Assembly (NCBI GenBank): GCA_964270895.1
Contig: OZ185440.1
Length of the DNA: 64,000 nt
From: Podarcis filfolensis
Taxonomy: Eukaryota
Reading direction: 5' to 3' (one strand)
The translations under genes were made by a program, and so were the position numbers. The notes below the pieces were generated by a model. That model did no database searches. It saw only the letters and a program-made list of their open reading frames with translations, and had not been told where the DNA came from. Below are positions 8,625 through 63,483 of the stretch, piece by piece (within the stretch, counting starts at the first letter, position 1; each line of letters starts with the position of its first letter).

Positions 8625-8754
8625 CTGATGTTGAGCTGTGTTAACTTCTCCATTTCCTGCTCCATGTGTTCCTGCAGCTCACCCGGGCGCAGCAAGACCT
8701 GACAAATGGGGCAGATGGGAGCCTGGCTGTCAAAAAGTGTTGCCTTCTTTTTGC
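8625..8754 (-). CDS. RNF220: RNF220 internal coding exon (equivalent to human exon 3), 130 nt, phase 1 to phase 2, contains the CPICQ...H zinc-binding-like motif
   Basis: Minus-strand translation KKKATLFDSQAPICPICQVLLRPGELQEHMEQEMEKLTQL closely matches my recollection of human RNF220 KKKAAALFDSQAPICPICQVLLRPSELQEHMEQELEQLAQL. The acceptor is ttacAG|GC (AG at 8756-8755) and the donor is CATCAG|GTAAGG (GT at 8624-8623). Length 130 = 2 + 42x3 + 2. Confidence 0.95.
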
Positions 8755-23789: not shown

Positions 23790-24260
23790 ATTGAACTGTC
23801 AAAACTATTTCCTACAAGAAAATAGATTCATCAGCTTGCAGCAGGCAGGGTCAACGCCACATATCCCTCTCGCGTCGGCATCCGCTCATGCCGGCGCATA
23901 CCCAATGCTTCTTCGCAGTGCCGGCACTTTAGCTTGTAGCTCAGGGCCCCTAAGTGACTTTGAGAAATGGATAATCGATTATAATTCCAGAGGCCTCTCT
24001 GCAGATTTATCCGGAGAATGTAGAAAAGGCAGAGCTCAAGAGAAGGTAGGTCCTTCTGGCCGGCACGTCAATTGCTCGCACTCTCTCTCCAGCTTGGAAA
24101 ATCGCATCCTGAGCACGACTCCGTTTAATCCATCAGTACACAATCAATGCACTCTGTAATCAACTCTTGATCACTTAATTTTACACATGTTGGCTGAATC
24201 CCTTTGTTTAATCACAAGATCAGGCCACATCGCCACGCTGCCCCCTCTTGCACCACCAAA
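23790..24260. promoter_or_regulatory. CpG-rich putative conserved element
   Basis: High CpG density, the palindromes ATAATCGATTAT (23971-23982) and GTGCCGGCAC, and no TE hallmarks. Confidence 0.5.
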
Positions 24261-44989: not shown

Positions 44990-45720
44990 TCCATCAGCCC
45001 CATCAATCAGCAGCCACAGGGATGATCTGTTAATGTTTTTCCTATAGACAGACACATTATGTCTCCACGCTGCCTCTGCACACACCGTGTTTACACCCCT
45101 TCTCTCTCCAGGGAGTAAATCAACCAAATTGATACGAGCCGTGATTAATTGTGTATCTCGGACCAATCTTTCCCCGAGTCCCTCACGCGGGCGGCTTCCT
45201 CCTCCTCCCCCCCCCCAACAAACCAGGGGAGAGAGGAGGCCCTGCTTGGTTTGACGGATAGAGCCTGCCCAGGACGCAGCGAGATAAATTTGAGAGGCCT
45301 ATGCTGGGCTGTCAGCGTTAAAGATGATGGATGGGGGAGGTGAGGCGGGAGGGACCCGTTGAGCTTGGCGTAATGGAGAAGGTTCCTGGGGGATGGATGC
45401 TTGCCCGGTGATTCGGCGTTAATCTCCGGGCGCTGGCGAGGTGCTGACGACTGATAACAAGGAAATAGGAATGACAACAATTTTTAGCCAAGAGATTCTT
45501 CACAAAAATGCCAAGCTGCCGGAGGTCTGACAGGCTCTGATTGAACGGGCATGGGGAGGGGGCAGCCACCTTGGCGAACATGCAAAAGATGGATCATTTT
45601 ATTTTCCCGCCTGACCATCTACATTTATTATCATTCCTCCTAATTCCACCTCGCTTAGCAGCTTGTCACCACCATTTCTCTTCCGCCTGCTGGCTGATGG
45701 GACCAGACCTTCTGTGCAGG
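44990..45720. promoter_or_regulatory. CpG-rich putative enhancer or internal promoter
   Basis: One of the most CpG-dense non-TE stretches in the window (about 45130-45430), with TGATTAATTG, TAAATCAA, CTAATT and GATA (AGATAA, TGATAA) motifs. Confidence 0.5.
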
Positions 45721-52700: not shown

Positions 52701-53589
52701 ACTCTGCATGGACACCTTCTCCTTGAAAGAGGAAGTCCCTTTGCTCCTGTGTGCCATTCACTTTGAAAGTTTGCTTTGTTTATACAATTTCCGGCACAAC
52801 TTTCTAAGGCTTATGCCCCACTTAGTGCAGTTTACATAAATTAAAATCACAATCTGTCCTAAAAGGGATGACAATAGGTTCATTTCCCAAGCAGGGGCAA
52901 AGGAAGGCTAACCAGCACCTGATGCGGGTATTGGGGCAAACCGCCTGGCAGCGCATGCACCATATGTACGGCACATGCACGGCACCGCTATGTATGGCGC
53001 ACACACATGTGGTGTATGTAGCGGCGCTGCACGTATGCCACTTGGCAGTTTGCTGACGGCGTCGCTTGAGTGCCAAATGGACAGCAGTGGGATCCTCTGC
53101 TTGCAGCTGCAGTGGCAATGGAAGGATCCTCCGCACACGGCTGCAAGGGTGTGATGGCAGCGGCTCACGCCGCCACACCCGGGGGCAGCGGGGCAACCCT
53201 CCCGTGCGGTGCCTGCTTGTCACCTCCCTCAGAGATGGCACCCGGAGTGACCCCCCCCGTCCACTTCCTCTGCCACTGTTCCCAAGGCAGGTACATTTGT
53301 CTCAGGAGAAAACTCACCCTTTCGTATCAAATCAGGGCTAATTTTGGTTATATGAAAATATTCTGAGAAAAAAGTTTGAAGGGAGTGTTAAGCAAACAGG
53401 TCATTGTAAAGAAAGAACAGGAAACCTAAAATGTTTCATTTCCATAGGCTGGTTCATGCTTTTGATTTGGCAGAGAACATCCTGGAGTTTGACCTCACTG
53501 GGAGGTAAGGGACAAGGGCCAGGTTTTCCCCACACCTTGCAGCCAGGTGGCCCAGCTAAGAGGAAGCAGACTGGGGGTTGGGTACTGCT

Positions 53590-53910: not shown

Positions 53911-55559
53911 GATCAGTTTGCATTACATGTCTGTATGTCATAATTTGTCAGGTTTAATAGAACTTAGTAAGGAGAGGAGGGAAGGGAGAGAAGCCTTCAT
54001 GTCGTGTATGCTTAATACAAAATTGTCTGGATCACTTTATTTATTTCCCTCTTTGTTCCTGGAAACCAGAGAGCATGGGGCGTCTGGGAATTGCCTGCTT
54101 CATCCACATTGCCTTGGTCATCATGTTCTCTCTTACATGCAGCTCTCTTGCAACTTTTGTGTGTTCACATTGCATGGTGGATTGCCAGCCAACAGAAGGT
54201 GCTCAAATGGCCTAGGTTTCTGGTGCAAAAAGGAGATTGCAGTTCCTGTAGTACCATGCTCTTGTAGTTGTTATATAAACAACATACATTCAAACTAAGA
54301 ATCTCTTGGAGAGAGGGACCAGATCTCAATTTCTTCTGGTCTGTGAAATTTGCCAGAGATACTTGCCTGGTCTATAATGAAAATATTAAAAGGCCTCAGT
54401 GGCACCACATGGTAAATTTAAGAGCATATGGCATCATGCAAACTGTTTTGAATCCCACAGGCAGTGGGGTGGGTTTGATTTGCAACAAGCCACACAAAGG
54501 CTTAGCAAGCTAGCAAGTAAGTAACACATGGGCCATTTCTGTCCATATTCCAAAGGCTCTCCCAAAAGGCAGCGGACACCCCAAATGACCTGAAAGGAAA
54601 GCTGTGTGGTGTTTTTATTTGTGACATTAAAAGAGGACTCAGAAATTGCATCATTGAAGCTCCATTACTACTTGAAACTCTTCCTTGCAATAAAGATCTT
54701 GGAAGAGACCCCTGACAAAGTCACTTCTCATGGAAACTTTCAGGGTGGGGTTTTGCCTTCTAAATTACCATCCTACGCATCTGAATTAACCCACAACTAA
54801 ATGGATGGGGACAGATCACCCTTCTGCAAGATAGTGCTAGAGATGCTTTGAAAACTCACAGGAAAGTGCTACCGATTTCTATAATAACTTTATAATGTAC
54901 AAACCTATTATAGTATTTCATAATGTAAATTGTTGACCAATCCACTACACAATAATCAGGAGAGATAAAAGAGGGTACATATTTTAGAAGCTGAAATGTA
55001 GTTTCTTGTTGTGGCTGCAAAGGAATGTCAGCCAAGCTGAATGAACCACTAGGGTCCATCTGACTTTTGACCCATGCCCCTTATTGTGAGACCTATGCTC
55101 TTATTTTTGTTTCCTGCTCATCACAAACTTGATTGACACAACCGGCTGTGAATGCCTCTCTCTCCAACTCTGTGCTATTTCCTGAGGAAGTGATGTCATG
55201 TTTCCTAATGGGCAACAGTCATGTCGCCTTAATAACAGTCCCAGAAACAATTGCACATTTACTATCCAGCTTGCTCACTTGGCACACGGAGCCCATTCCC
55301 TTTCCAAGGCTTAATTTGATTTTGACATATTGGCTTCAGATTAAAGGAATCTCGTAAAAAAAAAAAAAATCCAAACACATACACATCCAGGTCTCTCTGC
55401 CCCCCCCTTTGTCATTCCTTTCGGGTCTTGCAGAAAAGTGCTAACACCATAATATTTTAAGGAGAGAAAATCCAAGTGTGCTTTACCCCCTGCTGGCTCT
55501 TATGCTGGGCTTATAAAAATTAAGTGGGAACTTACACAGCTGTGGGCTATAAACCCTTT

Positions 55560-55870
55560 GTTGCCAACTCTACTAGGCCTGGAGTTTACCTGCCTTGGTG
55601 GGGGGAGGTATCCACGGAGAAAGCCGAAACCGCAGTCCGATGAAGCCTACATGACTTTCCTGGGTGAGAATGCCGAACATGTGGAAGAGCAAAGAGTAGC
55701 CACTGGGACGGGTTCCTAGCAAGCAGCACAGATGCCTGGGGTGGTGGTGGAACGCCACGGCGGAGGAGAAGGGGGAGCAGGCATGCGAAACGACAGAGTG
55801 CAGTGAAGCAGTAAGAGCCCTCCCAGCTGAATATCAATTAGCATCAATTACTGACTTCATTTAATTGTCG
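55560..55870 (-). promoter_or_regulatory. CpG-rich island, candidate internal promoter or enhancer
   Basis: Many CpGs against a CpG-depleted background, no TE hallmarks, and tandem ATCAATTA motifs at 55833-55840 and 55843-55850. Confidence 0.45.
55590..55680 (-). CDS. Candidate alternative coding first exon of RNF220 (MFGILTQESHVGFIGLRFRLSPWIPPPTKA-G)
   Basis: ATG at 55680-55678, then 30 codons plus 1 nt, then donor CAG|GTAAAC (GT at 55589-55588). The phase-1 end joins the exon at 8754 as G|GC (Gly), continuing KKKATLF in frame. It lies in a local CpG-rich island. There is no transcript evidence. Confidence 0.4.
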
Positions 55871-56759
55871 TAGAAGATGAATTTGTCATTTTTAGTCTTG
55901 AATTAATGGGAGACCTTCAACTTTTCTTTGGCAGCAACCTGCATTTCCTGGCTTTGCTCAGCCTGAATGGGGGTAGGGGAAAGAACGGGACACTGGAACA
56001 GAGAAGGGAAAAGGAGGTTATGGTCCAGCTTCATACTAAGGAGTAGGTGCACTTGATTCAGGATTGGAGAATCATGTGACATGTCCCACATTTTCCAACA
56101 GGGGTCGCTGTAAAGAGACTATGGGTGGTGATTCTAAGGGGTGTTCCCTGCTATTCCAGTATCAGCCTCTCCTGAAAGAGGGCACTGGAGAACTGGCCAG
56201 GAGGAATCAGTCTACTCCCATTCTATGACTGCTTTACATGGCATATCATGTTTGCAAAGTGTGTCACAGGATTTGTTACATCTTCTATCCCAGCTCATGA
56301 TCATTTGCTGGGAGATCATTCCACAGATGGGAAACTGAAGTGGAGAGACAGTGCACTGACCAAGGCCACTCAGTGAGTGCATGGCAGTGTTAGATCTGGT
56401 TCTGTACCCAAACCTCTCAGATTTAAGCCCACCCTGCCCAGCTCTAGACCAGAGTTTGCTGCAGGAGAGACTTGATGACTATGAGAATCATAGTATGTAC
56501 ATAATATGCACATATATCCACAGCATTCATATACAGAACTGATAATTAAAATGGTTGACTCCTAACTTCACTTCTCATTCTGCAAAATGAAGCAGGTGCA
56601 AGTGGGCAAAAGGAAGGAACTGAAAAACACTTAGGTTTAGGTGTTGCGGGGGGGGGAGAGAAATACAGGAATGCCAGCACACAACCCATGCTCTATCCTT
56701 GCATTCCGTTTTGATTTCTTATTTTCTTTCCATCTTTCCATCCCCGACCCCCTACCTTA

Positions 56760-57030
56760 GTTCTCAGGCCAGAAATTAATTTTACAGCCATGAAGTGTTT
56801 ACATTTTTTCCAGCAAACAGGCAATGGTAAACAATAAATGCTCGGCAGCAAAATTGAATTTATAACTGCATTACGGCACCAGATAACGCCCTAAAATAAC
56901 AACGCGATAAGGAAATTCGATTTGATTGCCTCTGCACATCAGCTTGGGCCCATCTGCAGCCCGGGCCTCCCTGTAATAATTTTCAATTGGGTTTGTAAAC
57001 CTTATTTGTCCTTAAATATTTCTGTCATTT
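56760..57030. promoter_or_regulatory. Putative enhancer with forkhead, GATA and homeodomain motifs
   Basis: TGTTTAC (56796-56802), GTAAACA (56827-56833), AGATAA, GATAAG, AATTAATT and TTTATAA, with CpGs retained in AT-rich DNA. Confidence 0.4.
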
Positions 57031-60000
57031 TTCATTGCTAGAGACAAATCCTTGGGTATACAGCAGTAGACGGACTGCTCTTTAGGAGAGATTTGTGTGT
57101 GTAGGTGTATGTGTGTCTATGTGCCTGCCAAAGCGGTGGGAAGACATCTTGGTGAGCAGTGGTGGACGATGCAGGGTGGGGGTCGGATCTGGAGCAGCCG
57201 CTGACAGTCATACGTCCAATCAATCACATTGCTGACAGGGAAGAATCACAGACCAGAAATTGAGTTTGACTCACATGGGATGACTGAACAAATTAATAGA
57301 CCATTAGCCAAGCGGTGACCTGAGAAATGATGGGCGGATGCCTCTCCATAAGGCTCGAGCTGGAGTGTTTTAATATGCACATCCCCTCAAATTCAGCAAG
57401 ATTCCAGCACTTTTCCAGGAATGTGCCCCCAGCTCTATTCAAGTTTCAGAGTGCGTTTTATGAAGCTGCTTAGGGATTCAAGGGCCCAAAGTAGAAAATG
57501 AGGGCATGGTGGAGAACTCTAATGTTTAGCATCTCTTTCAAAACAAGCATCCACAAAGCAAACAGACCAACAAGGATTAAACCACCCTTACTGCATAAGA
57601 ACAGCAACTCCAGTAACCCACTCTGGACAGGAATTGGATAAAGATTTTATAAAGGCTGATTATTTCCAGTCTTTTTCAGTCAAATATTTAAGGACACCCA
57701 TTTTAAAAGGAAGTATGGCCCAGATATCTTAATTGTTAGAAAATGATATCCTCATCTTACATCAATCTTATTTAGAACTCAGTTATGCTGTTGGCATTTG
57801 CCACACTTGTGGCACAGCCCTTCGAAGATCAATTGTGTGTGGGTAAATATTTCTCTCTTAAGCTTCCTTTGTTTGTTCTTTGTAACTAGCCATAATAATT
57901 TTCAAGATCTTTTGAAAAAGGTAGCAGTTAATTCAAAAGCGTAAGCAAATCTGTCTCTGCATTTTACTTTGCTTGTATATTTTTGTCTTTATCAGCAGTT
58001 CATTTAATTTGACATTTCATTGCCAACACTCCCAGGGTTATATGCATCTTTTGAGCTGCAGCTCACAACCTGGTCGAACACTGATAGTCATGAGCATTCT
58101 GATTGATCTGTAATGACAGTAGAGATTTCCTGAAAAACAAGCTTTAATATAAAAGGCGGAACACAAAGGAATTTGTTCTTACCATGAAAGTTCATTCTAT
58201 ACAGTTGGCAGGACAGCCAGTAAGAAAGGAAAGGGTTAGTAGCCCCTCAGACTACTTGGCAGGTAAAGTCAGCCTACCTGAAAATCTCTTTCCATATAGA
58301 AGTTGCCTTCCAGTTTTAGATATAGCTACAGCTTATTAATTTTATAAAACAGAAGCCAACAAAAATCTAGAATATGGAACTAAATAGAAGAAAAGGAGGG
58401 GAAGAGAACTGGCAAGCCAACCCTGAATCATTCTTACATGGTGAGCAAGTATGAGGGGGGGGGGCGCACAGGGGCTGCACCAACTAGCCCCATCCCCTAT
58501 ATGATGCATACAGAGTTCCTCCACTCCCCCCTGCCATGGCTCTGTATTTCTAGAAAGGAAGCTATTGCAAGTACAGCTGTATGCATGAATATTTCCATGT
58601 GAGAAGGGTGAGAACCTTCAAGGAAATGAACTTAATGGGCTTGAAGAAGACAAACATGAGGCAACAGATCCAATGAGAGGGGTGCTAGAGGAAATGGGAT
58701 ACTGTAGCTCCACAGAGTGCTGCAAAATTAGCATTTTGCCATTAGCTCACAACATATTGTGTGATGCATTTAAGTCTGTTTCGACACTTCCTGGGGTTAC
58801 ACCTCAACAAGGTGGGAGGAAGTCAACATCACACTCTTCTGATCATTCTGTCAGCACAAACATTTCTTCTTGCCAGATGGAATGACCTCCCCCCTCTCTC
58901 CCCACATGCTGTTCTGCAGGGGGTGGGTCCTCCTGATCCTCTAGAGAATATTTTGGGGAGGTGTGGGGGGGAGGGAGCCCTACTGTTGTTAGCTAGAGCC
59001 CTCACAATGGCTTCCATTAGAGTTCTGGGTAAGTTGAATCTGGGTTAGTTAAATGGCAGAAGAATACATTAGACTGAATGCTGGGAGCTCATGACAAAAT
59101 GCCAAGTTCATAGCACCCTGTGGTCTGTAAGAGCCATAGGACATTACCTGCTAGTGTCTTAAAATGAATGAAGCTTTTTTTTTTTGTCTCATCCCCCAAA
59201 AACATCAGGTCGCAGAGTCTATTACAGAAAGTGAAGATGACGTTCTCATGGACCATGCCCCTTTCATTCTGGATACCAGAACGTCCCAATACAAAGATAT
59301 ATGCTACGGATTTTGAACCTGAGACAACTGAGATCCAAGAACCATGATCTCATCGAACAGTGTAGATCTATAAGGATTACCCTGAACTGTAGCACTCTGA
59401 TAGATAGAATTTGAAACATTGAAACACTGAGGAAAAACCTGAGAGCACCACAATAACAAGGCACTGCACTGGCGTTGTCCATGTCTTGGTCAATATGTCC
59501 CAGCAGAGCATCCCATCTTGCCATTGACTCTGAGTGCCCCATCTCTGAGTTATCTCATGAAAGACTTCCTAGTAGGTTTGTGATCTAGTGCTATGCTAGT
59601 GACCAATGTAAGAAGAAATGGACCAACATATCCTTGGCTTGCACTTTTCTTTCTTAGGAGATTGGGGGGGGGGTATTGTACCTTTTTTATTCTTTATCTA
59701 AATGAGGGCTTCCTTCAAGAAACTGCCACTAATACATCCCAAACACACAGGCACAGTAATAGATTTTATCATCACTTGCTACCAACCCATCTCAACAGTG
59801 AGGTTTACAGAAATACGAGAACTGAAATAAAATTCCTGCTCAGACACAAACTTAGTTAAATGGCTTTGGACAAGTGATTCTCCTAAATCCTAGTTTACAA
59901 TGTATAAAGTGGGATAATATGATCTAGCATGGCATCCAGCCTCCTGGGCACTCCAAAAATTGTTCCAGAGGGTCCCCCCAACCTTCTGGATCAAGGGGCT

Positions 60001-62361: not shown

Positions 62362-62712
62362 GGGATGCGGATGGCACTGTGGTCTAAACCACTTGCCAAT
62401 CAGAAGGTTGGCGGTTCGAATCCCCACGACGGGGTGAGCTCCCATTGCTCGGTCCCAGCTCCTGCCAACCTAGCAGTTTGAAAGCACGTCAAAGTGCAAG
62501 TAGATAAATAGGTACCGCTCCGGCGGGGAGGTAAATGGTGTTTCTGTGCGCTGCTCTGGTTTCACCAGAAGCGGCTTAGTCATGCTGGCCACATGACCCA
62601 GAAAAACTGTCTGCGGACAAACGTCAGCTCCCTCAGCCAGTAAAGCGAGATGAGCACTGCAACCCCAGAGTCGTTCGCGACTGGACTGTCAGGGGTCCTT
62701 TACCTTTACCTT
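62362..62712 (+). mobile_element. Sauria SINE (Squam1-type), near full length
   Basis: tRNA-like head GGGATGCGGATGGCACTGTGGTCTAAACC...GGTTCGAATCC, Bov-B-type (ACCTTT)n tail, and a 13-bp target-site duplication TAAAGCAGCAACA at 62347-62359 and 62713-62725. Confidence 0.9.
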
Positions 62713-63038: not shown

Positions 63039-63095
<57 letters not shown>

Positions 63096-63120
63096 TACAT
63101 ACATACACATACACACACAC
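63039..63120. repeat. Compound (AT)n(AC)n microsatellite
   Basis: Direct reading. Confidence 0.97.
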
Positions 63121-63483
63121 AGAGAGCTTTTATTCACTACCCAGTGGAGGGATATCTCACCTTCTTACTAATGCTTTTAGCACAGACACTCGGTACATTA
63201 TGAAGACATAATGTGGCACCACCTCACTCCTACTATTATTTATTATGTCTCTCTCTCTGGTGACAGCCTAAGGCACTGGACCTGGGATAGTGGATGAATT
63301 CTCAGACAGGAAGGAAATGGGGGAGGAAAGGAGGATGAAGCATAAGGTCCCTTGTTATAATCATATCAGCCACCATCAATGTGTTAAAAAATGTGGGCCT
63401 CCAAGTTAGATCTTTCCTTCTTCTTTCTGGAATTGTAGCTTTGGAACACAGACTGGACCTACAATAGGTGAACATGGTACAGC

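Follow-up and report, generated by a model that had tools for sequence, protein, structure and literature searches.

The open frame at 55590-55860 in the large middle intron of RNF220 in the lizard Podarcis filfolensis is tentatively read here as a chance frame within a non-coding regulatory patch, a reading to which we give a probability of roughly 0.45. An earlier note on this DNA had proposed that the same place hides an alternative first exon giving RNF220 a different N-terminus. That observation is partly confirmed: the letters all hold, but they carry no signal above chance. Most likely the ATG, the open frame and the GT came together by chance in non-coding DNA, and what is probably real is the CpG-retaining patch itself. 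Positions are those of the window, by which is meant the whole stretch of DNA analysed (64,000 nucleotides of contig OZ185440.1, assembly GCA_964270895.1). The features on which the argument turns are the following.

55591-55680, minus strand: ATG with 30 open codons, the proposed unique N-terminus (read directly).
55584-55590, minus strand: G at 55590, the last exon base and first base of a split codon, and then the donor-like GTAAAC (55589-55584).
55716-55784, minus strand: out-of-frame upstream open reading frame (uORF) of 22 codons (read directly).
55716-55717, minus strand: AG, possible acceptor of a cassette unit that would begin x-GA (read directly).
8625-8754, minus strand: RNF220 coding exon of 130 nt, start of the Pfam RNF220 domain (Pfam match).
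55614-55813, no strand assigned: small CpG-retaining patch, 11 CpG in 200 nt, with GC 0.575 and an observed-to-expected CpG ratio (o/e) of 0.72.
55824-55867, no strand assigned: three homeodomain-type TAATTG/CAATTA cores (55835-55840, 55845-55850, 55862-55867) and a CAGCTG E-box (55829-55824).

Read letter by letter, the minus strand carries the ATG at 55680-55678, and the 30 open codons that run from it are followed by the G at 55590 and by GTAAAC from 55589. The frame is open from 55833 over 81 codons and is closed upstream by a TGA at 55836-55834, and the donor context is CAG-GTAAAC, with G absent at +5. The weak Kozak context ascribed to the ATG was borne out (C at -3) and extends to a T at +4. 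The out-of-frame uORF is likewise there, with an ATG at 55784, 22 codons and a TAG at 55718-55716. The translation signals of the candidate are therefore poor, combining a weak Kozak context with an upstream out-of-frame ATG. An AG is also present at 55717-55716, where it was suggested as the potential acceptor of a 126-nt unit (55715-55590).

The exon to which the candidate would be joined (8754-8625) is preceded by ttacAG and reads KKKATLFDSQAPICPICQ... after the split codon, of which its first bases, GC, are the last two. Because it opens with two codon bases, a phase-1 upstream partner is needed. It matches Pfam PF15926 (RNF220) over the first 35 profile positions with an E value of 9e-13, and its nearest database relatives all have the PF15926 domain. 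The claimed phase match stands up, the G at 55590 and the GC of the exon forming a Gly codon (G-GC) in frame, and the distance given as about 47 kb comes to 46.8 kb. The patch falls within the large middle intron, and nothing else that codes for RNF220 intervenes between it and the 8754 exon. These elements are what a real alternative first exon would use: a promoter at the CpG patch would drive an exon that ends at 55590, is spliced to 8754 and is translated from the ATG at 55680. Its 31-residue N-terminus would stand in for the roughly 210 residues that the large upstream exon encodes, making it the lizard counterpart of the human exon 2a isoform. The ATG and the open frame are present, as is a usable donor in the correct phase, but these features are at chance level, and the weak Kozak context and the uORF upstream also count against such an exon, which we consider unlikely.

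The chance level was gauged from the intron itself and from shuffled sequence. All minus-strand GT sites in the intron part (8755-64000) were scored with a simple donor matrix. With a score of 3.3, the donor at 55590 comes sixth when the ranking is confined to phase-1 donors that have an in-frame ATG before them and 20 or more open codons. Arrangements of an ATG, at least 30 codons and a phase-1 donor with a score of at least 2 number 10 in the same 55 kb, the candidate included. At a score of at least 3, a phase-1 ATG is found at 22 of 79 donor-like sites, with 5 of the 22 in CpG-enriched surroundings. Dinucleotide shuffling of the stretch leaves a frame of at least 81 codons open 35% of the time, and 14% of ordinary intron windows have one too; the unshuffled stretch has more than 80 open codons in both frame 1 and frame 2, two of the possible three. 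With 99 C and 84 T in 311 nt it is C/T-rich, and its frames stay open because such sequence has few stop codons. By the donor scan and the shuffles, then, the candidate arrangement is not rarer than chance in the same intron, and a search for minimal start exons of the ATGG-GT type gave none that was convincing. That the frame is unexceptional on these counts (the shuffles, the ten arrangements and the two open frames) is one of the points in favour of the regulatory reading.

The patch had been described as a non-TE, CpG-rich island. The local enrichment is real, but the word island overstates it, as 55590-55860 holds only 11 CpG with GC 0.55 and o/e 0.55. Background o/e in the window is 0.21, against 0.72 in the best 200-nt window (55614-55813), and at that minimum length only does the patch reach the 1987 minimum for a CpG island (at least 200 nt, GC at least 0.5, o/e at least 0.6). 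It falls short of the stricter definition (500 nt, GC 0.55, o/e 0.65). In line with the non-TE description, the patch is single copy in the 64 kb, is without N masking in this window and is not flanked by terminal inverted repeats, and a search for a tRNA-like head, repeats or terminal inverted repeats at the patch gave nothing convincing. A real first exon would draw some support from a CpG patch that just reaches the 1987 minimum, and from its being single copy and free of transposon ends. Against that exon, the intron part holds four stronger CpG patches that are promoter candidates at least as good.

The same CpG figures bear on the possibility that this is plain unconstrained intron, devoid of function, with CpG count, motif group and frame each due to chance. 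Four CpG patches in the 64-kb window are denser, so that the candidate is fifth or sixth by CpG count, and 7 of 236 non-overlapping windows hold at least 11 CpG; both figures are in keeping with plain intron, as are database searches that were all blank. This possibility is doubtful, since the patch has 11 CpG in 200 nt where about 2 are expected from the window rate, and since CpGs at which C-to-T is silent should have decayed if they were methylated and unconstrained. Several CpGs in the candidate frame occupy such silent sites (TTC-G, ATC-G, CCG-T), and their survival would favour hypomethylation or base-by-base constraint over protein-coding constraint alone.

Elsewhere in the window, the densest CpG patch is found at 52941-53211, 2.4 kb from the candidate, with 21 CpG in 271 nt and GC 0.63; it is a better CpG-island candidate than the patch at 55590-55860. 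Further CpG-enriched patches in the RNF220 intron lie at 62411-62681, 45181-45451 and 23871-24141 (16-17 CpG in 271 nt each), each of them a possible conserved element or further start site. A simple repeat at about 63080-63170 appears as alternating IY and TH residues in ORF translation.

Under the favoured regulatory reading, the roughly 200 nt that retain their CpGs, in a genome otherwise strongly depleted of them, would be a putative cis-regulatory element, enhancer-like or else weak and unmethylated. It would belong with the conserved non-coding elements known from the large middle RNF220 intron of other vertebrates, and such an element would bind transcription factors and encode no protein. 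CpG retention suggests that the patch is constrained or hypomethylated, and motifs together with the literature point to a regulatory function. The TAATTG/CAATTA triple spans 33 nt (55835-55867) directly upstream of the frame, and only two such clusters occur in the 64 kb, the other being near 591-650. Developmental enhancers typically carry homeodomain and bHLH sites, and the homeodomain-type cores and E-box at 55824-55867 are suggestive of a putative enhancer.

The middle of human RNF220 contains one of the 52 top or densest ultraconserved clusters, with 12 elements of which none lies on an exon (PMC13513235 Table 2). With this intron known for a non-coding ultraconserved cluster, a CpG-retaining and repeat-free patch within it has a ready non-coding explanation. 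The patch resembles the members of the RNF220 cluster (dedUCE cluster 2, PMC13513235; UCNEbase, PMC5836973) in lying in the large middle intron, in being repeat-free and in adjoining homeodomain-type motifs. It also has a CpG density similar to that of the UCNEbase element RNF220_Mateo, which holds 12 CpG in 324 nt and is 94% identical to zebra finch (PMC5836973 Table 2). Identity with RNF220_Mateo was considered and rejected: the published bisulfite assay oligos, with C or T allowed at each T, match nowhere in the window, and the patch is therefore not that element. Composition also speaks against an ultraconserved element, as ultraconserved non-coding DNA is reported to be depleted in CC/GG (PMC13513235 Table 1), whereas the patch is rich in C-runs (55600-55800), which is atypical.

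Two further points weigh against the regulatory reading. An internal promoter also looks like a small unmethylated intragenic CpG patch, and human RNF220 has an annotated start between exons 2 and 3 (PMC12296455). Orphan intragenic CpG islands that act as alternative promoters are similar to the candidate in being short CpG-retaining patches in a gene body, here with a donor just downstream; unlike them, the patch is at the very bottom of the island definition (200 nt, o/e 0.72). The two functions could also be combined in a conserved element that doubles as an active internal promoter, from which lizards, and perhaps other sauropsids, would express a short RNF220 beginning with the distinct 31 residues; we hold this combination to be rather improbable.

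Sequencing runs were compared with the 801-nt stretch at 55300-56100 through word shares, that is, the part of its sampled words present in each run. Of the sampled words, 0.96-0.76 occur in the genome-sized runs of organisms E and F and 0.20-0.21 in those of organisms A and B. Each of seven small runs (70-440 million letters, from four studies, of organisms C, D and one other) contains 0.13-0.14, which amounts to one piece of about 130-140 nt. Across four other organisms, runs share a constant 13-21% of the stretch, which would fit a conserved core. The piece in the seven small runs is exon-sized and could speak for a first exon, but among the runs listed with words of the stretch none is on record as RNA. 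The share of 0.13-0.14 fits an exon-sized RNA piece, a captured conserved element or a restriction-site library equally well, and a GCATGC at 55787-55782 is a possible restriction-library site. For organisms A and B, the share of 0.20-0.21 equals that from an even 5% divergence and fits that equally, which suits plain intron; against plain intron, a random spot present in single copy would hardly turn up at one share in all seven small runs, drawn from four studies, unless these are restriction-site libraries. A transposon or multi-copy passenger DNA has also been considered as the source of pieces in low-depth runs of several species. It would account for the constant piece shared by the small runs, but the 64 kb contain the sequence only once and show no convincing terminal inverted repeats or tRNA-like head, and we regard this source as far-fetched. 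Since capture, restriction-site libraries and even divergence fit equally, the word shares were rejected as proof of an expressed exon, and they were counted for no reading.

A further alternative keeps the donor at 55590 and pairs it with an acceptor, so that the 126-nt unit (55715-55590) would be a transcribed non-coding or poison cassette between the large upstream exon and 8754. The AG at 55717-55716 follows a pyrimidine-rich run, and by our own arithmetic the unit would take up 12.5% of the sampled words (a share of 0.125), near the 13-14% of the small runs. The canonical junction codon with the 8754 exon, x-GC, is presumably the Cys of the human protein, so that x would be T. As the unit starts x-GA, an upstream exon ending in T would give an immediate TGA and mRNA decay, which would make the cassette a poison exon rather than an insert that keeps the frame. 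That T is deduced from the human protein, as the window does not reach the upstream exon, and a second AG at 55737-55736 (minus strand) is preceded by a better pyrimidine run and competes with the first. Such a cassette is very unlikely.

Database searches for the peptide were blank. The 82-codon frame gave no match among 1.84 billion cluster representatives, where at 50% identity an isoform differing by 31 residues would merge into the canonical RNF220 cluster. It shared no words with the 45-143 aa proteins of a 5.8-billion library, a length range that excludes an isoform of about 370 aa. The translation of frame 2 found no homologue in the protein library, the candidate frame had no Pfam match, and the start of the candidate peptide was not found in a literature search. 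The fragment range of the library is sparse: with the 42-aa translation of RNF220 exon 3 as query, only 12 library proteins of 23-73 aa were found to carry this universally conserved exon, all of them ORF calls on genomic contigs, with no transcript fragments among the matches. The blank peptide searches are consequently weak, and the peptide's presence in no protein of either library counts against a real first exon with that weight. A contig search for one carrier of exon 3 returned only a 974-nt contig around that exon, and for a neighbouring 62-aa ORF no encoding contig is on record.

Scans of prokaryote, viral and metagenome collections for related loci gave nothing real; a viral locus matching at 32% identity was taken for chance. 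A 21-letter pattern from the TAATTG cluster had no matches in metagenomes, and Rfam gave no match above threshold on 54000-57500. A Sphinx_2 match at 54237-54403 (24 bits, where the gathering score is 34; E 0.15) was likewise taken for chance.

The wider interest of the candidate comes from what is annotated in human. RefSeq gives RNF220 four isoforms and five start sites there, with alternative starts in exons 2a or 5a (Choi et al. 2025, PMC12296455), and these isoforms are a point in favour of an alternative first exon in the lizard. Human isoforms 2 and 4 are without the N-terminal region, and isoform 2 initiates in exon 2a, between exons 2 and 3 (PMC12296455). As a putative exon in genomic sequence, the candidate would agree with the description of isoform 2 in gene, intron, internal start, loss of the exon-2 N-terminus and splicing into exon 3. 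The same study, which dealt with isoform 4 only (308 aa, starting in exon 5a), shows that N-terminally truncated RNF220 predominates outside the brain and that it may persist in the exon-2 knock-out mice commonly used (PMC12296455). The concept of an internal start replacing the exon-2 N-terminus is thus already annotated in human RNF220, and by this analogy the idea of an internal RNF220 start can be called biologically sound.

Nothing lifts the lizard candidate above the chance background. If the patch is a conserved non-coding element, it would be an ordinary member of the known RNF220 cluster. If instead it does drive a short RNF220, that form would be a parallel to human isoform 2, itself little studied, and would escape an exon-2 knock-out; were such an additional start between exons 2 and 3 conserved, it would affect the interpretation of exon-2 knock-out mice.
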